Positions 6,834 to 38,788 are shown, counted from the stretch's first letter. The stretch is DNA of 64,000 nt from Dicyema japonicum (GCA_011109175.1 RDEW01000002.1:934676-998675); one strand, 5' to 3'. A program made the numbers and translations. The notes: generated by a model not told the origin, from the letters alone.

Positions 6834-9398
6834 TCACATTTTCCATAAGTGATGTAATAATTTTTCTATCTTTCTGACTTTCAGGTCGTAATCCTCTTCG
6901 ATATTAGATTTTAAGTCCAGTCCATATGCCAATTTAATCGCAAATCTTCTGGACTTTTCCAATTTTTTGACAAAGACATCACTTTCTTTTGTTCTAAACC
7001 ATCCTTGATAACCATATATCAAGAATGGTTCAACACACGCCGAATACACAAAAAGAAAAGTTTCAGGCTCCAAATGAAATCGAATTAAAGATTTCAACAT
7101 TCCTGTAGCTTTCTTTCTTCGTGTTTTAATATGTTCCTTGAAAGATCCTCTTCGGTCTATCAACAATCCGAGATACTTCAATGTTTCAGAGATTTTTATA
7201 TCCCCAGTATTCACACATTGATTAATATTTTTTCTTTTACTTGCAATCCAAGTGACTGTTGTTTTTTCCCTCGATAGAGTCAACCCATTGTTTTGGCACC
7301 ACTTTCCAATCTTAGTAATATGGGATTCCACCCTTTTCCATGAAATTTGTTTATTCATGCTTGAATCAAGCACAAGAATGTCATCAGCATAAATAATCAT
7401 TTGACTATTTACGCTCTCTGTTTTCGGCAAATCTCTCATTACGCAATTGAAGAGTAGCGGGCTGAGAATTGAACCCTGTGGAACTCCTCTTCGCAATTCA
7501 ATTTTCTTTGAAATTAAATTTCCAACACGTATATATGACTTTCTTTTTGAAAGAAAGTTTTCTATCCATAATAACGCAGTTTTCCCAATTTCTGCTTTTG
7601 ACAACGTATCAACAAGTCCAAAGTGCCAAACACTGTCAAACGCTTTTGTTATATCCAAACATGCTATTGTAAGAAATTCCTTTTTATTTCGTGAAATTTC
7701 GATTGCAGATCTTAGCTCTTTAAAGCAATCTCCAGTCCCTTTTTTATGCCGAAATCCCAGTTGATTATCAGAGAGAAAATTATTATCCTCAACATGCCTT
7801 GATAGACGATTGAAAACAATTTTTTCCATAACTTTCGATATTGAGCAGACTAGGCTAATTGGCCTATAACTATCTGCTTTTGACCTTGGCTTTCCTTTTT
7901 TCACAACCATGCGTACAATTGTTCGTTTCCAATAAGCTGGAACATGACCAAAACTCCAAGAAGAATTATATAATATTTTTAGGCACTCAATCAAAATTGG
8001 GCCTGCGTTCTTGAAAATACTCATTGGGATAAAATCCCACCCTGGTGCTTTATTTTTGCAACCCTTAATTGCAGCATTTATTTCTTCCAGCGTTATAGGA
8101 TGACACAAGGGACCACTCAATTTCGACTTTTCTTTATAACTACTTCTTGTATCTTGTACTTCTATCGGAATAAAAGATGCCGGATCTATCTCTTGAATTT
8201 TGGACAATTGTCGACGTAAAACATTTGGAATTTCTTCTTTTGGAATAGTGAGACCATCATCTGACTTGAGAGATATTTCTTCATTCTTATTACTGGGAGA
8301 ATTCATTCTTGCATATAGTTTCCAAAATTTTGGGTTCTGTCGACGTAACTTTGAACATTCTCTTTTCCATACTTTTTCTTCATTCTTCTTTACAACATCC
8401 ATTATTTTCTTCTTCACTAACTTGATCTGCATTTTAAGTTCTTGAGAGTCGAAGATATCCCAACACCTCTTTAATTTATTTTCTAACTTATTCTTCTCCT
8501 GACGCAAAGAGCGTTCTTCTACTCCTATTATCATATTTTCCTGCGGCAACAGATTTTTTCTTTTTCCATAATTTTCCAGATAACTTAACAACAAAGATCT
8601 TATTTTGTTATCCAGAATGTCGATATCTTCCGGTTTCGAAATCCCCAAATCACAAACATTACCAATTTTCAGCCTGATGTAGAAATTGAAGTGATTCCAA
8701 TCAATTTTGCTGACATCATATCCAATGAATAACTGTCGTGTGTAAACCGGACCAGTTTTTAATTCAATCGTTTGTGGGATGTGGTCACTTCCTATGTCAT
8801 TTTCGATATATGGAGGATCACACATTTCACTCATCGTCAGAGGCATTATGAACAATCCAAGTTTATCACCACTATAAGTTGCATAGTGATTTATTTCTGC
8901 TGACGTCAAAATTTTCAATTCTCCTGATTCCATCCACTTTATAAGACATTTTCCATCCTGATTTGTTGTAACACATCCATAATCAACATGCTTTGCGTTC
9001 ATGTCCCCAACCAAAATCGAATTCACGTTTTCGTTAAAAAATTTCTCAATGATCCAAGGGTACTCACGTAAGCTCTTAGAATAAATTCCTCCAACTGTTA
9101 TCCATCCAATATTTGTTTGTATTTGCACACTGACTAGTTCACATACATCTTCTTCAATAATTCTTGGTCTCTTCGTATTCAAATTAGATTTATAATAAAT
9201 CGAAGTTCCAGTTCCAGAAATAGAACCCTTCTTCCACGGAATATCAATTGATGAAAATCCATTAAGTTTAAAAGAACTTCCCTTCTTGATCTTCGTCTCA
9301 TTTACTATCAAAACATCCATATGCACTGTGCTGACCAATGCAGTCAGCTCTGAAGCCCGCTTCCGAAGAGAGCGGGCATTAATCAGGGTTATCCTGAT
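6834..9398 (-). CDS. LINE ORF2: APE endonuclease + reverse transcriptase (~855 aa; no in-frame AUG before the first conserved motif)
   Basis: INARSL, NETK, GDMNAKH, SDH (APE); KAPGWD, YRPISL, QLGFR, LDITKAFDSVWH, GVPQGSILSP, YADD, YLG (RT). Confidence 0.95.
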   Translation of the reverse strand: MRITLINARSLRKRASELTALVSTVHMDVLIVNETKIKKGSSFKLNGFSSIDIPWKKGSISGTGTSIYYKSNLNTKRPRIIEEDVCELVSVQIQTNIGWITVGGIYSKSLREYPWIIEKFFNENVNSILVGDMNAKHVDYGCVTTNQDGKCLIKWMESGELKILTSAEINHYATYSGDKLGLFIMPLTMSEMCDPPYIENDIGSDHIPQTIELKTGPVYTRQLFIGYDVSKIDWNHFNFYIRLKIGNVCDLGISKPEDIDILDNKIRSLLLSYLENYGKRKNLLPQENMIIGVEERSLRQEKNKLENKLKRCWDIFDSQELKMQIKLVKKKIMDVVKKNEEKVWKRECSKLRRQNPKFWKLYARMNSPSNKNEEISLKSDDGLTIPKEEIPNVLRRQLSKIQEIDPASFIPIEVQDTRSSYKEKSKLSGPLCHPITLEEINAAIKGCKNKAPGWDFIPMSIFKNAGPILIECLKILYNSSWSFGHVPAYWKRTIVRMVVKKGKPRSKADSYRPISLVCSISKVMEKIVFNRLSRHVEDNNFLSDNQLGFRHKKGTGDCFKELRSAIEISRNKKEFLTIACLDITKAFDSVWHFGLVDTLSKAEIGKTALLWIENFLSKRKSYIRVGNLISKKIELRRGVPQGSILSPLLFNCVMRDLPKTESVNSQMIIYADDILVLDSSMNKQISWKRVESHITKIGKWCQNNGLTLSREKTTVTWIASKRKNINQCVNTGDIKISETLKYLGLLIDRRGSFKEHIKTRRKKATGMLKSLIRFHLEPETFLFVYSACVEPFLIYGYQGWFRTKESDVFVKKLEKSRRFAIKLAYGLDLKSNIEEDYDLKVRKIEKLLHHLWKM

Positions 9399-10441
9399 TA
9401 CTTCTGATTTTTTTGGTGGCTGATCCCTCCTCTTAGGATCGCCACCAAATCCAATAAATGCTTCGTATCCTTTTTTGTTTTCGTTACTTCTATAATGCTT
9501 TTCTCTAATTTTTTCAAAGTTTGTGAATAATCAAGTTGACATTCACCATCATTGACCTGTGTTGAGATTTCTTCTTTCTTTCCCTTCACAGGTTCTTCTG
9601 TCTGAGTAGAAGCTTCTACTGTTGCCCTTTTGACCGTTGGAATATTCCAACAAGTTCGACCATCAAGAAAAGCTGACTTAGCATTTTTTGCTATAGTATG
9701 ACTATTTCCGGATTTGGCAAGTTTCTTATCTTCTTTTTTGGAGACTTTTGACTTTTCAGCAACTTTCTTCATTTTCTCACGATTGGCTTCCATAGCTTTC
9801 GGACAACCTCCATAATTTGCCAGATGAGTAGTCGACCCACAATTAACACAATTTTTTGTATCATGCGATGCTTTACATTCAGATCTTCTATGTGATCCCG
9901 AACAATGTAGACACTTTTCTAAGTTCTTGCAAAACCGAGCAATATGTCCAAACTGTTGACAACGAAAACACTGAATTTCTCGTTTTATATACCATTCCGC
10001 TTTCATCTTCAAAAATCCAATAATCAATCCCAATCTGACAATGGATTCTGCTTCTCCCCTGCTTGTTAAGACAAGCTTAACAATAGGCAAGCTAACACCA
10101 CGGCGTACAAATCTTTCAGCTCGGAACTCTCCTGTCAACTTTGACCGAAGAAAATCCTTTAATTCATCCATCTCTATCCATGTCGGAACATTTTTTAGAA
10201 TTATAGTCGAAGGAGGCAGTTTTACTTCCTCCATCTCATGTCCACCCAATCCAAAAGGATTACTATCATTCATTGACTTTTTGAAATCTTCAAGGTCTTC
10301 CAAGTTCTTAAACTGCAGGATAAAATCGCCAGTATGTCGACGAGATATCCTAGCTCTTCTGGCTGATTCCATCCCATCAAAGATGTTAACAATAGTTAAA
10401 TTCCCATGTTTAGAATTAATAATTAACCTGACAGAGAACAT
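9398..10441 (-). CDS. LINE ORF1 gag-like nucleic-acid-binding protein
   Basis: 347-aa ORF with three zinc knuckles: CFRCQQFGHIARFC, CLHCSGSHRRSEC, CVNCGSTTHLANYGGC. Confidence 0.95.
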   Translation of the reverse strand: MFSVRLIINSKHGNLTIVNIFDGMESARRARISRRHTGDFILQFKNLEDLEDFKKSMNDSNPFGLGGHEMEEVKLPPSTIILKNVPTWIEMDELKDFLRSKLTGEFRAERFVRRGVSLPIVKLVLTSRGEAESIVRLGLIIGFLKMKAEWYIKREIQCFRCQQFGHIARFCKNLEKCLHCSGSHRRSECKASHDTKNCVNCGSTTHLANYGGCPKAMEANREKMKKVAEKSKVSKKEDKKLAKSGNSHTIAKNAKSAFLDGRTCWNIPTVKRATVEASTQTEEPVKGKKEEISTQVNDGECQLDYSQTLKKLEKSIIEVTKTKKDTKHLLDLVAILRGGISHQKNQK

Positions 10442-19773: not shown

Positions 19774-20869
19774 ATGCTAAGAAATTTCAGAATTTTCCCA
19801 TCAAGTATCAGTAATTCCTCTTTTTTGCGGCGAATTGCAATTTCAGTTCCAATTGTATGTGGGATTGGATATGTCTGGCTATCAAATAATTCTACCGGCA
19901 AACATATAAAGGCATAACAATTTTTGTGATATCAGAAAGTGAGGTTTATTGACGACGATTCAAACTTGAAGATTACTCTCTACCAGTACCAGTCATGTCC
20001 GTTCTGTTCGAAAGTCCGGACTTACCTGAACGTCCGCGGAATCTCCTACAATCTTGTTCACGTTGATTTCCTCATGAAAAGCCAAATTAGGTGGTCGAAA
20101 TACAAGAAGGTGCCCTTCATTACAGTTGAGGAGGATGACGAAATTATAGTAAGAGAATGCTAATTTCAGCAAATTAACGAGTCGTCCCAAATTCTGAGTT
20201 GCCTTGAAAGCTATTTGATTCGGAAGAATGAAAAATTATCTGAAATTGTCAAATATTTCCCTCAAATTGAGGAAGACGGTAAAAGTGTGGAATATCCCCA
20301 CAAATACAACATCATCTATGGTGACCAAACCAACTTTGATCCTTCACTTATAAAGTTGTCTTACTAGTTTATTAGACGACAACGAGAATGGAGGGAATGG
20401 GCAGATAACAAGCTACTCCACTCATTTGCACCAAATATTTACCGCACTTACTTGGAAGCCGTTAGGACTATCATGGTTTATGACAGAGTGGCTGACTGGC
20501 CCAGCATGTACAGTTGGCTGCAGAGACAAATTTATATCTACGGAGGCGGCTTGATGTTCTATGTCCTCGGAAAGCTGCTTGCTAGAAAGTAGGGGATTTT
20601 TACAAGTAGGTATCACGTGGATTCAAATGTGAGGCTTTCGCTGTATGATAACGTGAATACCTGGATTGAGGCGATAGCTGGGGACGATTATATTGGGGGA
20701 AGCACGCCTGATCTGGCTGATATTGTTTGTTTCAATGTAATCACTTTAGACTGTCTTTGGCCTCTTCCAAAGCATCGACGGATCTGATGCATTCGGAGAT
20801 TTGTTGGGTAATACTAAGCTGGAACGATGGTATGAAAATATGAAGAATTGTCTTAAAAGTCAACTTTAA
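19774..20869 (+). CDS. PTGES2: Prostaglandin E synthase 2 (glutaredoxin/GST-like), 6 exons
   Basis: TLYQYQSCPFCSKVRTYL (CxxC), WSKYKKVP, REWREWADNKLLH..APNIYRT, GGSTPDLADI.VFG; introns of 24 (GC-AG), 21, 21, 21 and 25 nt give a continuous frame. Confidence 0.95.
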
Positions 20870-20987: not shown

Positions 20988-23900
20988 ATGGAAGAGTCCT
21001 TACTAAAAGCAGCGGCCACCAATGATGTGAAGCTTCTCAGATTCTGTCTCGAAACAGCATTTCCGTGAACTCAACCAATTTGGTATTCTTAATAAACAAT
21101 CTGCTAATAAATTGATCGGAATTCTGAGATTGTTTAATTATTAATATTGATTTATTTATCAAACTACTGTTTAGAATGGATTCACTGCTCTCCACATTGC
21201 CTCCAAAGCCGGTAACTACGATATTGCACATGAACTCATCGATATGAGTGCAGACATAAACGCAAGGACACAGGTTATACTTTTACGTTTTGTGGTTATT
21301 TAATCATTACTTTGTGTTGCATTTTATTTATGTGCTTTTTGACATTTATATTGCCTTTAAATTTATGTTAATGTACTTTAATGGAGCCTTACCTTTCAGA
21401 TGGGGAATACTCCCCTCCACATTGCCGCACTTGCCGGCAGACTCGAAATCGTGGATTTGCTGATAAAGAACAACGCCAATGTCAATGCCCAGACAAATGT
21501 ACGTGTTTGATTTATTTTCAGAGGGGCTTCACTCCCTTGTATATGGCAGCACAACAAAACCAAATTGACATCGTCAAATCTCTCCTCGCTGCGGGAGCCA
21601 ATCCATACTTGCTGGCTGAGGTAAACTTTGGCTTTATCCTAGGACAAATTCGCTCCCCTAGCTATCGCCTCACAACAGGGACATGCAGAACTGGTGGACA
21701 TTCTGCTTACTCACGAACAAATGCTTGAAGGTTCTGAGAAACTTACAAAGCTGCACATGGCTGTTAAAAAGGAGAACCTGGACATCATAGAATCTCTCCT
21801 ACTGACAAACCACCATGTGGACGAATTATCAGACGTAAACATGTCTAGACACGTGTAGGACGGAGTTACGCCTCTCTGCACAGCAATCAACTTCAGACGA
21901 TACAATGCCGCCGTCCTGTTGATCTCCAAAGGCGCCAATGTGAATATTAGTTTGACAAATGACAACCGACCGATACACTTTGCCACCAAGACGGGACGAT
22001 ATAAATTTGTGGAGTTGCTTGTTTCCTCTGTGGCGGACGTAAATGTGACTAATAAGGTATTCTGATATTCTCTTTATTTGAAGGGCGGGTTCACTCCCTT
22101 GCATTTCGCTGCAATGGGCGGTCACCAGGAAATACTTGAGATGCTATTAGAAAACGGGGCAAATCCGACTGCCCAAACGAAGGTAGGGTCACTCATTACT
22201 CTCAGACCGGTCTCACTCCCCTCCACTACTCTTGCATGAAAAATCACGACAGTTGTGCCAGATTACTCATAGCTGCGGGGGCCAACGTGGAAGCAAAAGC
22301 CACAGTTCTCACAAACCGTAAATTATAGAATGGCCTCACTGCACTCCATGCTGCAGCTCACTATGGATGTGATGCAGTCGTTAAACAACTCATAAATAGA
22401 AATGCTGATTTTAATGCAAAGACATTAGTATTCGTTATTTTGAATCTTAGAACGGGTACACTCCTTTGCACATTGCTTGTTCTCGCTCTGCCTTTGAAGT
22501 AGTCAGTAGTTTGCTTTACTACAATGAAGTCCTCATCGACGAACCAAATTTGGTAGGTTATGGCTCTTACTTAAAGGATGGCTTGATTCCACTCCACACG
22601 GCAAGCTTTATGGGGGAATATGAGATTTTGAAGCTGTTGGTGGATAATGGAGCTGATTTGACGACCACCAATAACCACGGAATGACCGTCGTTCACTTTG
22701 CAGCTGCCAAAGGCAGTGTGAGGATTCTGAAATATCTAATAAAACTAAACTGTGATGTCAATACCCTCGCTAAGGTCGCTTAATAAGTCATCTTAGAACG
22801 GAGAGACTCCTCTACTGTTATCAGTGTACTCTTGTAATCTGGAGCCACACAACTGCTTATTGAGAACGGTGCCGACTGTCTAATAGCCTCCACAAAGCAA
22901 TACAACGTCCATCACATGGCTGCTAAACACAACATGGTCGATTTGATGTTTCTACTGCACGAATCAGTAGTGAAAAGTCAAGGAGTTGATGAGAATTTGC
23001 TGAGGAAAACCTGTGTTGATTTCAATTCTTTGATGAATTAGAAAGGATTCTGTCCCATCCACGTGGCTTCGAAGTATGGGAACGATTTGATCGTCAAATA
23101 CCTGCTAACGATCGGGACGACGTCAATATGATTGCTAAAGTCTTTAAAATTCGATAAATTTAGAGGAAACTGACTCCATTGTTGATTGCCACTCACTACG
23201 GTAACTTTAATGTCGTCGAAGTGCTCTTGGACTTCAAAGCAGACTTCAAACTTGCCGCCTCTGTTTAAAATTCTAATTATTTTAGAATGGATTCACGGCT
23301 GTTCACATTGCTGTCTTGTATGACAACTTTGCCATCGCTGAGCTTCTGTTGATGGTGGGAGCCTCCCCTAACAGCCTCTCAAAGGTCTATCTCCCTTTTA
23401 CGACTAGGCCGGGTTTGCTCCTTTACATATTTCTACGAGTCGTCGTTCTGTTGAAGGAACTGCACTTCTAATAAAATATAACGCCTTCCATACCCCCATA
23501 TCAAACGTTGTCATTTTAGATATTTGTTAGGAGGGGATAACACCTATGCACTGCTGTGCTAAAGAAGACTGCGTTGATTGTGCGGAACTGCTTTACGTTG
23601 AGGGAGCGTCTTTGAATGAACAGAATAACGTTTTTTTATCATTAATGATTACCAGGACGGTTATACTCCGCTTTTGGTCGCTTGCTACTACTGCAGTTTG
23701 AACATGATTTTGTTTCTGCTCAAAAATGGGGTCCCTCTAGACCACCAGACTAAAGTTGGGTTGACTTGGTAACTTAGATCGGATACACTGCTCTTCACCA
23801 GGCTGCACAGCAGGGGTCAACTGAAATTGTCTCTTTGCTGCTGAAACACGGTGCTGATCCGAATATACTGTGCTACGTATTACTGATCTTATTTGGTAGG

Positions 23901-26900
23901 AGAATCAAACAGCACTCGACATAGCAAAGCTGTTCGACCACCCTCAAGTCGTCGAATTACTTTCAGATTGCACGAGTGTGGAGACAGATGGTCCTATCTC
24001 CAAGGAGAAACGTGTTTATGCCCAGCCAATGGGGGTCTCTGACAGCATATTTATAGACTCTGAGGACGAAACCAGTAATATTGCCATTTCAGCGCCATTT
24101 CGTGTTCTATAGTTTTCATGTTTCGTATTAATTTCAAATTACCGCATTAAATCTTCTTGTGATGCTGTTTATTGTTACAATTCTTGCAGCAATTTTATGC
24201 ATCATTTCTTATATTTTTGCCATGTTTTACGTTTATAATTTGTCTTTTGGTTACTTGGTTGTAACATTTTAGGTGATGGCCACACACTTCGACGATTTCT
24301 GCGATTCCCAAGTATGTATTTATCATTATGTCAATCCTCCATTATATCCTATATTAACGCACGTGACAGCTGTTGTCACTACTAATATATATTACTTCAT
24401 TATATCGTTTTTGTATATGAGCTTATTTTGCTGTTCTCGTAAATCTAAGCGATGGTGTAATAAGCTGTTCAAACGACGCAGTAATTTTGTGATTTATTAT
24501 AACACCACTCCATCTCTAATCCAGTTAATCCCTTAGTTACATAATATCTGTTTTACTGTTACCTTCTTAGAACTCGTCGATAACTCTTCTAACTTGCTTA
24601 ATAGTAATCAACCAATCATTCACTCCTTTGACGTCACCTCCACTATAATTGTCGCTTTAATGGTCATTTGTAGCCTGAGGATCACAATGTAAAGGAAACC
24701 AGACTTGACTTTACCAAAGAGCAGCCAGAACTGCCGAGGAATGCACCATTAGTTTCGGATTCATGTATTTTCACATCGAGCAAGCAGGCCGCAAACCACA
24801 CATTCACCAGCCTTTATGATTCAATTGTTAAGCATTCAACAAACGATTCCAAATCCCACATTCTGGCGTTTGATGGACACGCAAATCCATACTTTTACTC
24901 TAATTATTATTCATTCCTAAAAGTTGACAATGACAACGTTCTACGGTTGTACCCTTCTCAAAAATCCAACATTTGCTACGATTCTCAGGGAATTCCTTTT
25001 GTGGTCTCACATGACTTTACTCTGTATTACGACTCTAATAAGCAATTGATTGCCAAATCTGCTGATTCGAGGACTTTTTGTGTTTATTATGGAGATGACT
25101 TTAATGGTAAACAAGTCACAAAGCCGAGTGTGGGAATCAGACTTAGAGGGGATGACTATTATGCCGTTGAGAAGGACGAGCAACTATTTTACGATTGTGA
25201 TGGATTTCCCATTATTGAAGGGGACGGAATTTTATACTCAGATTCCCACAGAAAACTGTTTTATGTCGACCATAAACAAAATCAAGTCAAACCACTATAC
25301 TATAGGACATATCAACTGAAGAAAGAACCCAAAGACATTCTCACTACATTTGACCACTATGGAACTCCTCTCCTTGGAATGATCTCTGAGTCCTCGTTTT
25401 CTATGACTCGCAACACTTCTGACCAGTCCACCTGCTATTCTGAGTTTTTCGTGTTGAGTAAGCACGGAATTCCGTTATTTGGAGATTCCGCTTCCAGTCA
25501 GCTTTACTTTGACGATGAGGAAAATTTAGTGTCTGTTGACAAAGATGGTATCTCCACTCCAATTCTGATAACAGAGAAGCAAACTCCCGTCAAGATCACC
25601 GTCTCCAAAATTGTTGATGTGACGGATGATGCTGCTTTCATAAACTGCCCCAATTATGCCCATGTTCAGTACAACTATTACGGATTCCCCATACTTTTCG
25701 CTGATTCCCGACAAGAAGACGTCGATTATAGACCAAACGGTCTCCTTGAACTGAATTCCAAAGTTCTGTGTACTTTTGACGACAAAAGGCCATTAGTCTG
25801 GCCTTTGGCGTATGCTGATGCAATTTTCGACTGTATGGGGGTCCCTCTCCCTTCGTCTGACTTGTCCCTTTACATGAAATCTGTTGTTATTACTGATGAA
25901 GCTGTTGTGCTAAATTCTGACTTTCCCACGGGAAACCTCGTTTACCTCCCTAACGGGTTCCCATTTTGTAATTTCTGTTTTCGTAATATGCTGACTTATG
26001 GAAGTGATGGTTTACTTTATTATGACGACGGTAATACTCGGAGACCTGTTATGAGCAATTCACTGCAAATTCAGAAACTCTCTGTTGATGTGGAATTTGT
26101 TAACAACTCGTATGTTGCCTTAGAAGACGAGTTCTTTTATGATTGCTTTGGAGTGCCTTTAGTTGATTTAAAGTTCCCGTCTTTGGTGTTGACTGTGAAG
26201 GAGGACGGTCGTGTTTGTGTGATTGACGGAAATAATCTTACCGTTGAGTTTTTCCTCTTTGATTCCAATGGGAGATTTGTTAGTCGTCGTTCTTGTCTTG
26301 GTTCAGTGCTGTACAATAGTTGGGGGAAACTGGTTAATCTTAATGAGTATGACGCCTCACTTGTCCATTCGGATAACAGCTATCAACTCAAATATTCAGG
26401 TCAAACTGGATTGATCTATGACGACAGAGCATGTCCCCTTGTTATTAATGGAAATGTGTCATTATTGAAATACAACTCTTTGGGACAGCTTTTATATGAC
26501 AATCTGCAAGTTTACTATGAGGACGGATCTCTAGTAATGCACCCGGGATCAACTGTTGTGATTAACGATTCCAGTACATCTGCCTATTTGGTGCCCCGAA
26601 ATAACGTGAACTATTCAGTCGACTGGCATGGTGTACCATAACCACGGCAGAAACACTAGGCTCTATTCTTCTACGTAATGACGACTATACTCTCGACTTT
26701 ACAGATGGAATCAATTATACTCCCTTATATTATGACAGTCAATGCTGTGAAGTCATGAAAGCACATGTTATGCCGGAAAATATGAATCTCTACTACACGT
26801 CTGACGGGGTTAAACATGAGGGCGACATTCCTTATGCTGAAATCATTAGTGAATCTGATGGGAGTTATCGCATGCGTGAAGATGAGAGTGAAGTTGTGTT

Positions 26901-29900
26901 TATGCCGACTGGGACGCCTCTCACTAATTTACAAAGTGGAAAGGGGGATCTGCTGTATTATGATGATAATCAGCTTGTTTGCTATCCTTATGTCTAAAAT
27001 GCCAAACAAGGTATTTACTAGTCGCAAAACCCCGTTTACTGACCCACGTGCATCAGTTTTTGAGAGTGAGGAGACTTTGTATGTGAAACCCGGTTCGAGG
27101 GGAACTGTCCTGTTTGATTGGAATGGAATGCCATTGGTGGATGTTGGGAAAGTTAGGCCATTATCCAATGGGACATTCTTGTCCTATTCAACCTGTTCCA
27201 ACCTCCCACGTGTGCTGGTAAGTTATGAAACTGATCGACCCATTGCAAGGAAAGGACTGGACAAACAGAGTCACTTGGTAACTAAAAGAGTGACTTTTAG
27301 TCTAATTTGGGAGAGGATGAGGTTGAGTGGACCGATTGTGTGTTGGTGGAGTCCCCTGCTTTTGATAAGTCTAAACACGTGCTAGAGGAGTCTTTTGTTT
27401 CTGAAAATTTTGTTGATGGGCTTTATCCACTGCCTCATAATGGGATCAATCTAAATATTTCTGGCTCCACGAAACCGACCACGTGTTCGCTTCTCAGATT
27501 CCGAGTCAGTTTTGTATTGGATGCACGGCCGAAGGTGGTTGAGAATAAAAAACTTAAAAATATGCGCATTTTTGCCGGCGTAAATTCAGTCATTCGTCCA
27601 ACATTTGTTAATGTCAACTTTCTGCATCCCTCTTCCGTTAATTGTCCTGATCTGTCCGACGGGAACAGTTTGCTACAAAAATAATACAATTTACTGCAAC
27701 TCAGGATAATTTTAGAAGGTTTTTTTATCAACTAAAGTATCAGATCTCTGGTTATCGACATTCCCGTGTACACAACCGACGATAGTTCCCGCTCTCTTTA
27801 TGTGCTTTATCAATCAGATGCAAAATGGATTCCTTTTAATCCCAACTCTGAGCTTGTTGAAGATATCATTAGTTCAGCGTGTTCATCCACTGGGGGTAAA
27901 ACATATTTTAACCAAAGATAAAGTCCCCAATTCATCTCAAAATGTGCTTCGGCTTTGTGTGGAATTTTTCCCCATCACTTTGGCCGTAATTTCCCGCCCA
28001 AAAATCAATATTTTCACAGTTGACAGCAATCCTCAGACCATTTCCCCTGATAACAAGTGCTTCTTCATGTTTCCTCAAAATTTTGTCAGAAAACCGACAG
28101 ATATTGCCATTCAGGTCGTTCTCCTTGATATTTAGATGTTGGATGTCTCAATGGAGGATATTCAGTCGACCGTTGGGAAGAAAGTCTTTGTGAGTCCAAT
28201 CATAATTATTAAACCCTCAAATGTCGTCTTCCAGGAGCATTTCAAATGCCAAGTTCCACTAATTGGTTATGAGAACAAAAATAAGTTGTTTGACTTTGAA
28301 CATAACGCCCATCTGTTCACCTCATCAAGTTGTGCTTGTTATTACTTTAGGAAAATCAACCACGTGGGAGGATATGACCTATTCTACTGATATTGTGCTA
28401 CAGAGAGACTTTAATATTGCCTTCACTTCATCGAGGAGTGCAAAGTATTTTTGGAGGGTAAATGGTAGATTCTGGATTATGATGTCCCTCGAAAGGGACG
28501 AGACCACGATTAGTAATAAACTGAATATTCTGTACAAGAAGACTCTGTCGGTTGATTATATGGCCATGTTCTACGTTTTTGCTGCCCGGGTGTCTCCCAC
28601 TTCCTTTCACCTCATTTGTGCTTGTGTGACTGACGCCGTCGACCAATCGTTCCTTTACTTTGACAAGAGTGGTTATCAGCAGGTCGTCTCCACTAAACAC
28701 TATAACGTACATTTTATGTTACTCTAAGATTCCTGGATATCAGCAGATATTCGTTTCGGTCTCTGGTGGTGGTTGTTATATGATAAAACCACTGGAAGCT
28801 TGCAAGATCTATTTCGACCCTTTTTTCGAAAATTTGTTGGGAGTTTACGTGGAGTTCTTTGAAAGCTCAGAAGGGACCCCCCAAATAACATTCCTTAACG
28901 AAGACAAATCCCGAATATTTACAAAGTCTTTCAATTACCCATCTGATGCACTCGTAAGACTATTTTATTATCATTTAGCCAAATACTAACAAATCTGTCA
29001 ATAATTCGACTGAAGGTTGACTCTGGGGTTATTTTAGCTGATTCTCCGTTGAATGGATGCTATTCTACGTGATGTTAAGATTATCAGTAATTCCTTGATA
29101 TATTTCAGCTGAAACTATTTATGAGGAGAATCTGTCCGACGACGTTGAAGTGACTGCATTAAATTGATACGCTTGTTGACATTGCATGTGTTCAAAGTGG
29201 AGATCAAAGTAATGTCGATAATGTAAGCAGTAGGTGATTCCTTTGATCGTCCTGTTGACTTTGTAAGTTTTGATGATAAAGTTTTACCTGGTATTATGGA
29301 TTACTGACGTCTAGACGATAATATTGCTGAAAGTTTGGTGGCAATTGATCCTGGATCACCAGTCAATGTAACACATACAGTAATCCACCAGGATGACATA
29401 CAGGTGACTCAATCACTCTTTACTGGAGTGGAGGAATCGACTAAGGAAGGTTTGTGATGTTTCAATTGCTAGTTGAGGTTGTAATTGAGGACATGAAAGC
29501 TGAGGACATAATTGGTGAACAGACTGTGACCCAGGACACTCAGGAGACTGATGAAGGTTTGATGGGAAGTGACCTTAATAGTTGAGGTCTACATTGAAGA
29601 GTCTGTCATTCAAAGAGTGGAGGACACCAATGAGGGGGGTTTGATGATTACTAATGATAATTAGGTGAGGATGATGACTCTCATAGTAATTCCATGGATG
29701 AACATTTTGTGATTGAACATTTCTCATCAAGAGAGGACGGTTTGGTCGTTTAAACAATTCCTAGTGGCTGAGACTCTTAGGGATTCAAACAGTCCAGTTG
29801 ACCCAGCACGTGAGGACGACCAGCTTATAGTGTCTGGGGTGTCAATCCCACTAATCTCAACTGAAGATAACCAGAATTCTGATCGGAATCAGCAAAATAC

Positions 29901-30218
29901 TGCACAATGACTCAAATGTCTGTTATTAGTGAGGGTTAGTCAATGTGAATGATTGTAGTCGAGATTATCGTTGGTGATTCAGAAGATGGTGATAATTCTA
30001 ATCAAAGTAAGTTTATCATTTTTGTTATAATTATTGGCTGTTGTGAATTTTGTTGATAATTTTCAGATGGTTTGGTAGATATTGCTGTTTATGTAAATCC
30101 ATTGCCGTATTCTGAATATATTTGGCTTACTACTCCCTGTCTTTTGCATTTTGTACGCATACTTGAGTACACTGAATATTTTGAACCTTTCTTTGATGTT
30201 TATTACTTTGATTCATAA
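20988..30218 (+). CDS. ANK: Ankyrin: long ANK-repeat array, giant repetitive insert, ZU5-ZU5-UPA, acidic tail; 3' end approximate
   Basis: Serial ANK repeats ([32 protein letters not shown]) split by phase-0 introns; ZU5 [10 protein letters not shown] at 27499; [13 protein letters not shown]...CACVTD at ~28550-28700; several single-base indels. Confidence 0.9.
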
Positions 30219-37493: not shown

Positions 37494-37705
37494 TAAAGTG
37501 GGTCTTACCAAAAGCAAAGTGGGTCTTACCAAAAGCAAAGTGGTACTTACCAAAAGCAAAGTGGTACTTACCAAAAGCAAAGTGGTACTTACCAAAAGCA
37601 AAGTGGAACTTACCAAAAGCAAAGTGGAACTTACCAAAAGCAAAGTGGAACTTACCAAAAGCAAAGTGGAACTTACCAAAAGCAAAGTGGAACAAAAATT
37701 ATTTA
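37494..37705. repeat. Left TIR array: 9 full + 1 partial 21-bp units
   Basis: AAAGTGG(GT/TA/AA)CTTACCAAAAGC repeated. Confidence 0.95.
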
Positions 37706-38788
37706 ATAAACCATGTCATCATTATTTAACACCGATGGGGCCAACCTCTGAATTCTAGCAATTACGGTGTTGCATAAAGATGGAGTGATTATACATAATG
37801 AATTAATCATACTTTCTTCTAACTTTTGAAGTCGAAACTCCGTAGTTGACAAAGCTTCTTGTCTCACACCATTCAAAATATTTTTCATATCTGTAGCAAT
37901 GTGTCTTTTTACATCAGCTTTGAAAACTGACCAAATATTCTCAATTGGGTTGAGCATAGGGCTATAGGGACCCAATCTTAAAATTTTATTTCCGATGAAT
38001 TCATTATCTCTGACAATTTCTTCAATTCCTGAATGGCATGGAGCATTGTCTACTACTAGCACTACTGGAAAATTGTAAACTTCCCTGGCTTTTCGTAGAC
38101 AAATTCTCACCCATTCATGGGCGGATTCTTTATTAAAGGATCCACGTTTGAATTCATAATGCAACAATCCAAGGGACCCGATGCAACCAATGAAATGTAC
38201 ATTGGCACCTCGCGAACTTGTTGCAACGACATTAGCCCTTGTTCCTTTTTTTGATCGACCCTTTTTACGGGATATGTGCATGTTTATATTTGTTTCATCC
38301 ATAAATAATATTGGAATTTCCTCCGATTGATATTCCAATAATGAAGTTATAAATTTTTTTCTTTTTTCTTTATTTAATTCACTATTGCCTTTCTCTGGTT
38401 CATACCTGATATCTTTCAAAGAATAACAGGCACCGTCCAAGTGGACTCGAATGGTTTCTTTTGAAACATTTAAGCTGAAATTAGAATTTAAAAGAATTCT
38501 CAAGGTCTCAAGAGTAATCCTAGGGTTAATTTCGAGCTGTTCAACACAATAATCTTTATGTTTATCAAGAAATTTTTTTGCTTTTGATCCCCCTCGCTGA
38601 TCAGGTTTGTTTTTGTTTTTCAACCAACGATAAGTAGTAGTTTTCGGAACATCGAGAGATTTTGCAAGTTCCCTCCAGTCACCATCTCCCTCATAAGCCC
38701 CGATAATAAGATTTTTCTTAATTTCAGCTTCAGACTTTTTTATTTGAGCAGGCATATGAATAAAAAAATGAAATATTTGCGCAGACAT
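37703..38788 (-). CDS. Intact DDE transposase, 361 aa (HTH + DD35E)
   Basis: FMDETN, VVDNAPCH, PYSPMLNPIE (35 residues between D and E); N-terminal HTH. Confidence 0.95.
   Translation of the reverse strand: MSAQIFHFFIHMPAQIKKSEAEIKKNLIIGAYEGDGDWRELAKSLDVPKTTTYRWLKNKNKPDQRGGSKAKKFLDKHKDYCVEQLEINPRITLETLRILLNSNFSLNVSKETIRVHLDGACYSLKDIRYEPEKGNSELNKEKRKKFITSLLEYQSEEIPILFMDETNINMHISRKKGRSKKGTRANVVATSSRGANVHFIGCIGSLGLLHYEFKRGSFNKESAHEWVRICLRKAREVYNFPVVLVVDNAPCHSGIEEIVRDNEFIGNKILRLGPYSPMLNPIENIWSVFKADVKRHIATDMKNILNGVRQEALSTTEFRLQKLEESMINSLCIITPSLCNTVIARIQRLAPSVLNNDDMVY

Follow-up and report, generated by a model that had tools for sequence, protein, structure and literature searches.

A giant exon encoding a degenerate repeat array as a probable linker insert in a Dicyema japonicum ankyrin

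Within a 64,000-nucleotide (nt) stretch of the genome of Dicyema japonicum (GCA_011109175.1, RDEW01000002.1:934676-998675; hereafter the window, with positions counted from its first letter), the + strand from 21.4 to 29 kb encodes an ankyrin, with ANK repeats upstream and the UPA region downstream of a single outsized exon at 24674-27277. This giant exon is coding and under purifying selection, and its product carries a degenerate motif array rather than a clean tandem repeat. We propose, with a probability of about 0.6, that it is an internal translated exon of a canonical ankyrin gene and that it supplies a lineage-specific linker insert of ~870 residues, probably folded as a beta-rich repeat array. 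We infer its inclusion in the ankyrin mRNA, its folding, its origin by internal duplication and its function.

Boundaries, reading frame and coding status of the giant exon

The open stretch abuts a 23-nt, phase-0 GT..TAG mini-intron at each end, in agreement with the boundaries 24674 and 27277 that an initial annotation of this DNA had placed. Specifically, the mini-intron on the 5' side has the form and length of the 11 introns that separate ANK exons upstream, whereas a GTAAGT donor at 27218 followed by an 83-nt intron, likewise in phase 0, offers another possible 3' end. The exon thus delimited amounts to 868 codons as the window has it and to 869 in the haplotype that the reads support. 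The features of the exon and its immediate borders, all on the + strand, are as follows.

24651-24673, +: 23-nt mini-intron GTCGCTTTAATGGTCATTTGTAG, phase 0, directly 5' of the giant exon; it joins a 38-codon to a 655-codon open stretch
24674-27277, +: giant exon; 2604 nt in the window, 2607 nt (869 codons, stop-free) in the read-supported haplotype
26631-26659, +: candidate 29-nt GT..CTAG mini-intron (30 nt in the allele with an added A); its splicing would keep the frame in both alleles, joining ..VDWHG to SILLRN..
26637-26641, +: frame break; an A missing from the window after 26637 creates a TAA at 26639, and reads with the added A read VDWHGVPITTAE
26977-27010, +: putative intron of the initial annotation; 34 nt in the window, 36 nt in the reads, in frame and without a stop
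27278-27300, +: 23-nt mini-intron GTAACTAAAAGAGTGACTTTTAG, phase 0, 3' of the giant exon, read in the sequence

In the window sequence the reading frame is interrupted: frame 1 is open at 24674-26638 (655 codons), frame 0 at 26605-26994 and frame 1 again at 26786-27382, with coding resuming in frame 0 after the TAA at 26639-26641. Four genomic runs (X1-X4) from a single sample, aligned to 23600-28600, have no joints across that interval and are thus DNA; the reads carry Nextera adapters and date from 2019. The published assembly was merged from PacBio and Illumina data, and the sample heterozygosity was 1.24% (PMC6736024). At the second break, X1, X2 and X4 have CA inserted after 26987, at full depth, and X3 has AC inserted after 26988, with an accompanying 26990 A>G. 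Because two extra bases are present in all four runs and the frame stays open and stop-free, 26977-27010 is coding sequence with a 2-nt assembly deletion, and its earlier interpretation as a possible 34-nt intron is withdrawn. Similarly, the window is 1 nt short at 27660-27662 in the ZU5 exon, which creates a false stop at 27682; the reads add a G after 27660 or an A after 27662 at full depth in 4/4 runs, the two alleles differing by a synonymous GGG/GGA. The breaks at 26987 and 27660 are therefore assembly indel errors. These indels seem to sit at polymorphic sites, which merged PacBio and Illumina data make plausible, so that further frameshifts or unusual mini-introns seen in this genome may likewise be artefactual.

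The break at 26637 is of a different kind. The branch with the added A has a depth of 441.5, and the linked 26643 C>T accounts for 441.5/630.1 in X2 and 23.5/30.7 in X1, with X3 carrying the T allele only; the allele without the A is a minor branch of ~25-30% of depth in X1 and X2. The frameshift is thus a real minority allele and seemingly a segregating one. The added A completes another repeat motif, VDWHGVPI. In keeping with these data, the description of 24674-26976 as essentially uninterrupted stands for the read-supported haplotype, which has one 869-codon open reading frame (ORF), and fails for the window sequence, which stops at TAA 26639-26641. The segment 26631-26659 is disfavoured as an intron because it has a GC content of 48%, compared with 13-43% in real mini-introns, and because reading through it completes the motif. 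It may represent part of an exon on its way to becoming a mini-intron; alternatively, the frameshift may be a null allele that is tolerated in a cassette exon. More generally, the options for this allele are a skippable cassette, in which only the giant isoform would be hit, removal of 26631-26659 by splicing, or relaxed constraint.

Selection on the encoded protein is evident from single-nucleotide polymorphisms (SNPs) between the window and the reads. Of 18 classifiable SNPs in the ORF, 12 are synonymous and six non-synonymous, compared with ~28% synonymous expected for random changes at the observed transition/transversion mix (binomial P=8e-4), and the sites behind this excess include positions downstream of the 26637 frameshift. 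Scored with codon frequencies learned from the ANK and ZU5 exons (735 codons), the ORF frame reaches +0.15, +0.19 and +0.05 bits/codon in its three pieces, whereas the other frames score negative. The codon usage of the giant exon matches that of the neighbouring ankyrin exons, and GC at third codon positions is 0.41 versus 0.44 in the initial set of training exons, a set that included one out-of-frame segment.

The initial 235 codons of the giant ORF have no ATG, yet they bear repeat units and synonymous SNPs, which argues for an internal exon and not a free-standing gene. A transposon or a nested gene was considered and rejected, since there are no transposon domains, the depth is single-copy and the opposite-strand ORFs are all <=98 codons. 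Read depth is even over the exon and its flanks, and blastn of the exon and of the gap upstream of it against the window returned self-matches only. Additionally, the exon is a multiple of three in length and in phase 0 at both ends, such that skipping it would keep the frame, and it could therefore be a skippable cassette.

The repeat array and its relatives

The strict motif [FY][DN]xxGxP[LFI] occurs 7 times in the window translation of the exon (8 in the read haplotype), compared with 0.007 expected and a maximum of 2 in 5000 shuffles, an enrichment of ~1000-fold; a loose form gives 10 matches versus 0.12 expected. When all 64 kb of the window are translated in six frames, 7/8 strict matches lie inside the giant exon. 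An iterated position matrix retrieves 15 units, compared with 0.8 in shuffles, so that the exon holds ~15-16 degenerate units. Each unit is built of a hydrophobic strand followed by [FY][DN]xxGxP[LFI] and often by a second motif, LYYDxxxxL, ~18 residues on. The two kinds of motif can be aligned to one another by MAFFT, which suggests that the elementary unit is probably a strand, an aromatic-Asp pair, an xxG turn and a second strand. The spacing of the units is irregular, ranging from 15 to 107 residues, with ~53 recurrent (53, 52, 53, 54, 107) and a hairpin spacing of ~18-20 residues within residues 520-625. Tandem Repeats Finder detects no repeat in the exon at the DNA level, and since none has survived there, the duplications must be old. 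The tandem motif modules of the initial annotation are accordingly supported in their motif (7 strict matches versus 0.007 expected, ~15 units) and not in their regularity.

No known family could be assigned to this array, which had already been annotated as unrecognised. Neither Pfam, searched with whole pieces and six sub-pieces, nor NCBIfam gave a match, including RHS_repeat, YD, WD40, CW_binding and WG_beta_rep. A word-indexed search of 5.8 billion clusters found nothing, and phmmer with a 654-residue piece against 1.84 billion protein representatives returned two matches, neither of which we judged homologous. One of them (P0001) consists of 'YDADGTPW' repeats with helical spacers between them; it shares little beyond 'YDxDGTP' with the insert, and its E value is inflated by 13 repeated matches; the other (P0002) is a low-complexity bacterial repeat protein with an E value inflated in the same manner. 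Among all PDB sequences, a 12-unit profile had one chance match, a lectin, at E 0.77, and it matched no Tc, Rhs, teneurin or choline-binding chain. Nor is a WD40 or beta-propeller assignment supported, there being no Pfam match, no WD dipeptides and one GH. In a language-model atlas, the neighbours were WG_beta_rep, Choline_bind_4 and DUF5046 at 0.63-0.69, a range that shuffled sequences also reach and that is rated as providing leads only. A full-text literature search for 'dicyemid' and 'ankyrin' returned nothing on such an exon.

In terms of composition, the insert looks like the folded, strand-rich type: its mean hydropathy of 0.464 lies above the Uversky boundary of 0.431, and aromatic residues make up 12.6%. 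This agrees with the initial view that the insert is unlike the disordered inserts of known giant ankyrins, as its composition is of folded type and not Ser/Glu-rich (PMC5135030). The AlphaFold models reached a predicted local distance difference test score (pLDDT) of 32.9 for 654 residues as a single sequence and of 46.9 for a 109-residue two-module piece with the other modules as alignment; both, at this low confidence (pLDDT <50), contain short strands and hairpins only. A blade-like module of ~53 residues is as possible as the solenoid or shell suggested initially.

Position in the ankyrin gene and competing explanations

The exons and introns that surround the giant exon were assigned from reading of introns, domain matches and order along the strand. 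They comprise the following features.

21372-24103, +: ANK-repeat exons; Pfam Ank/Ank_2 E 1e-21 to 4e-7, introns read directly
24104-24650, +: gap that separates the giant exon from the ANK exons; unusually long intron or introns, at least ~430 nt in total, or a gene boundary
24273-24311, +: candidate small exon 1 within the gap, with an ATG at 24276 and a GTATGT donor
24537 or 24571 to 24650, +: candidate small exon 2 within the gap, without an ATG
27301-27718, +: exon after the giant exon; rest of the linker and, by position and likeness to the canonical sequence, the putative start of the first ZU5
27719-27743, +: 25-nt intron, GT..CAG, containing a T-run; its length varies by 1 nt among the reads, part of X1 having a deletion at 27720
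27744-28986, +: remaining ZU5 and UPA exons, the spectrin-binding module; UPA-region match on ORF 28263-28724

The ANK part is well defined. About 20 repeat-length exons of ~99 nt each lie in 21.4-24.1 kb, with Pfam Ank matches at E 8e-21 (ORF 22451-22780) and 4e-7 (ORF 21372-21620), and the mini-introns that split them are 22-27 nt long and all GT..TAG. The earlier statement that the giant exon adds ~870 residues to a gene otherwise cut every ~100 nt is thus accurate as regards the length of the stretch and the ANK part. The genome has a mean exon of 198 bp and a mean intron of 38 bp (PMC6736024), and introns of ~23 nt have been reported only from myxobolid cnidarians and D. japonicum (PMC13644364). 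Downstream, ORF 28263-28724 matches ankyrin-3, -2 and -1 in PDB (E 1.8e-6 to 1.2e-5) and Pfam UPA_2 (E 0.0011). The putative first ZU5 within 27301-27718 is assigned from its position and its likeness to the canonical sequence. Pfam has no match on ORFs 29308-29907 for a death domain, and such domains are short, exon-split and divergent. On the + strand beyond the UPA exons, no ORF exceeds 133 codons up to 37.5 kb, and the ancestral downstream long exon of ankyrin seems to be absent here.

Some neighbouring features of the window may be recorded at this point. The earliest recognisable ANK repeat is at 21372-21620; it looks like canonical repeat 4 of human ankyrin, and this ankyrin may have ~21 repeats and not 24. 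An unrelated gene lies just 5' of it at 20.0-20.8 kb, and its exons (20002-20784, +), which encode ..VHVDFLMKSQIRWSKYKKVPFITVEEDDEII.., look like those of a glutaredoxin-like or prostaglandin-E-synthase-2-like gene. The genome has a GC content of 36.7% and 49% repeats (PMC6736024). GC content in the window is 34-43%, and several transposon ORFs occur in it: the only other ORFs >250 codons are at 6834-10441 (-) and 37703-38788 (-), and they coincide with a non-LTR (long terminal repeat) retrotransposon and a DD35E transposon.

Between the two parts of the gene, the final ANK exon (23900-24103), if read without splicing, runs into an in-frame TAG at 24110. As many as 13,901 splice paths preserve the ORF from the last ANK exon to 24674, and phase compatibility is therefore uninformative; all 25 paths examined need a long intron of ~430-570 nt. 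The codon score of the gap is negative in all three frames, and the gap contains neither a repeat with a copy elsewhere in the window nor an Rfam family, the Rfam and tRNA scans of the window being empty. In frame 2, 24273-24689 forms a 139-codon frame with a single stop (TAG 24534-24536) and a hydrophobic stretch followed by a basic patch, which in view of the negative codon score is probably due to chance. Among PDB ankyrins, phmmer had no match for either the last ANK exon or the first part of the giant exon. PEDHNVKE at the start of the exon may resemble the vertebrate PEDLKELGDD, a similarity that phmmer does not detect. On the other hand, the common strand, the canonical domain order, the standard mini-introns at both ends and the lack of a start codon of its own speak for membership of the giant exon in the ankyrin gene.

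Based on these findings, we propose that the exon would place ~870 residues between the ANK-repeat solenoid, which binds membrane proteins, and the ZU5-ZU5-UPA module, which binds spectrin. The inserted domain probably grew in place, as a short strand-turn-strand unit was duplicated again and again and its copies diverged; this unit would consist of a hydrophobic strand, Tyr/Phe-Asp, an xxG turn and an x-Pro-hydrophobic strand. The insert may lengthen or stiffen the link between the two binding modules, or it may add a third docking surface in the linker. The exon may also act as a skippable cassette, as other giant-ankyrin exons do, in which case skipping would leave a linker of roughly canonical length. 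A bolder version of this proposal is that the ancestral downstream long exon was lost and that a nerveless octopus parasite of ~30 cells independently built a folded, beta-hairpin giant ankyrin of a new sequence family, as an in-frame cassette in the linker, and the frameshift may then be tolerated because the 29-nt segment is spliced out; we advance this only tentatively and regard it as somewhat doubtful.

Several observations weigh against the main proposal. When the ZU5 exons were searched singly against Pfam and PDB there was no match, and ZU5-N was recognised by no search tool; protein searches found no orthologue of the insert; the noncoding-looking gap of at least ~430 nt, with the stop at 24110, is unusual where the mean intron is 38 bp (PMC6736024); and a frameshift allele at ~25-30% sits uneasily with the exon being included constitutively in a single-copy gene that is essential. 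The long gap and the TAG past the last ANK exon, together with an ATTAAA at ~24147 and the ATG mini-exon at 24273-24311 with its GTATGT donor, would suit two genes, the ANK gene ending at 24110 and a second one running from the ATG at 24276 through the small exon, the giant exon and ZU5-ZU5-UPA. The second gene would then encode a spectrin-binding protein devoid of ANK repeats, with the repeat domain as its N-terminal part. However, phase-0 donors at 24104 and 24312 permit continuous reading, the 163 nt from the stop to the ATG exon would need to accommodate both a 3' end and a promoter, and ANK and ZU5-ZU5-UPA are in one gene in the surveyed placozoan, cnidarian and bilaterian ankyrins (PMC5135030). 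We consider a split of this kind unlikely.

The frameshift allele also bears on another explanation, according to which the exon is now being lost, either as a relic or as a cassette under weak constraint. The TAA at 26639 in the allele without the A, at ~25-30% of depth in X1 and X2, the failure to find a homologue and the strong degeneration of the units are all consistent with decay. On the contrary, synonymous changes exceed non-synonymous ones 2:1 (P=8e-4) even with sites past the frameshift included, the major haplotype is stop-free over 869 codons, and the Y/F, D, G and P residues of the motif are kept over ~15 units, which makes ongoing loss quite improbable. Least probable of all, and very much so, is a true YD/RHS, cell-wall-binding or WG-type beta-hairpin repeat that is homologous to bacterial or teneurin repeats and was acquired as a block through horizontal transfer or exon capture. 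Units of the type YNSLGQLL do resemble YDxxGRL, the hairpin spacing of ~18-20 residues in 520-625 is similar, and the atlas neighbours are bacterial hairpin repeats, albeit as leads only at 0.63-0.69. Yet RHS_repeat, TIGR YD, CW_binding and WG_beta_rep remain unmatched at E up to 10, the unit profile hits none of the Tc, Rhs, teneurin or choline-binding chains in PDB, the two phmmer matches among 1.84 billion representatives are repeat-inflated, no more than three units conform to YDxxG[RKQ]L, and the RHS core motif (PxxxxDPxGL) is absent. The kinship to RHS/teneurin YD repeats put forward initially is thus not upheld, and neither is acquisition as a block, as there is no donor-like homologue and codon usage and GC are native; 'YD-like' is a fair description of the motif style, kinship aside.

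Comparison with known ankyrins and hairpin repeats

Known giant ankyrins, namely 480-kDa ankyrin-G, 440-kDa ankyrin-B, Drosophila Ank2-L/XL and C. elegans UNC-44, each have one outsized exon, and so does the D. japonicum gene, where 2.6 kb stands against a mean exon of 198 bp (PMC6736024). Their long exons have no sequence homology with one another, and this insert has none with them (PMC5135030). The phase symmetry of the exon makes a cassette conceivable here as well. They differ in position: as the initial annotation had stated and the literature confirms, the described long exons follow UPA, and chordates have them ahead of the death domain, protostomes and echinoderms beyond it (PMC5135030, PMC12798937), whereas here the exon comes after the ANK repeats and precedes the first ZU5. 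They also differ in size, 2.6 kb being below both the mean of 8.1 kb and the 3-kb cut-off of the survey, and in composition, Ser plus Glu amounting to 13.9% and the six residues S/E/T/D/K/P to 38.4%, compared with ~25% and >55% (PMC5135030). That survey looked only downstream of UPA, and inserts before ZU5 in other animals may have been overlooked (PMC5135030).

Concerning the YD/RHS repeats (PF05593, TIGR01643) of Tc toxin B/C shells, Rhs proteins and teneurins, the insert shares the aromatic-Asp pair before an xxG turn and the flanking hydrophobic strands; its ~870 residues are similar in size to a YD/RHS shell, and the local spacing of ~18-20 residues is alike. In contrast, it mostly has GxP[LFI] where they have GR[LI], its spacing is irregular (15-107 residues) where theirs is a regular ~20-22, it has no core or plug motif, and its context is a cytoplasmic scaffold protein. 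WG_beta_rep (PF14903), the choline- and cell-wall-binding repeats (PF21540, PF01473) and DUF5046 are alike in motif style, with an aromatic residue, Asp, xxG and a hydrophobic residue, but they are extracellular bacterial domains and their hidden Markov models do not match.

The closest counterpart in position is the canonical linker between the ANK repeats and ZU5, which in vertebrates is short, largely unstructured and regulatory. The giant exon has the same genomic position, and skipping it would leave ~170-180 linker residues, as counted from the translations. The insert probably belongs to this linker, a place from which no giant-ankyrin exon has been described. If this is true, it would show that the linker between ANK and ZU5 can take a large structured insert, and the locus would offer a clear example of an old gene within which a new repeat domain arose. 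It would also serve as a natural experiment on the way in which a genome of 23-nt introns copes with an exon of 2.6 kb and with a frameshift that segregates in it. Ankyrin architecture is highly conserved, and the long exons described so far are Ser/Glu-rich stretches tied to neuronal functions (PMC5135030), whereas this animal has no nervous system (PMC2222250). Taken together, D. japonicum would present a selected exon of ~870 residues, of folded type and at a new position in ankyrin, in an animal without neurons.

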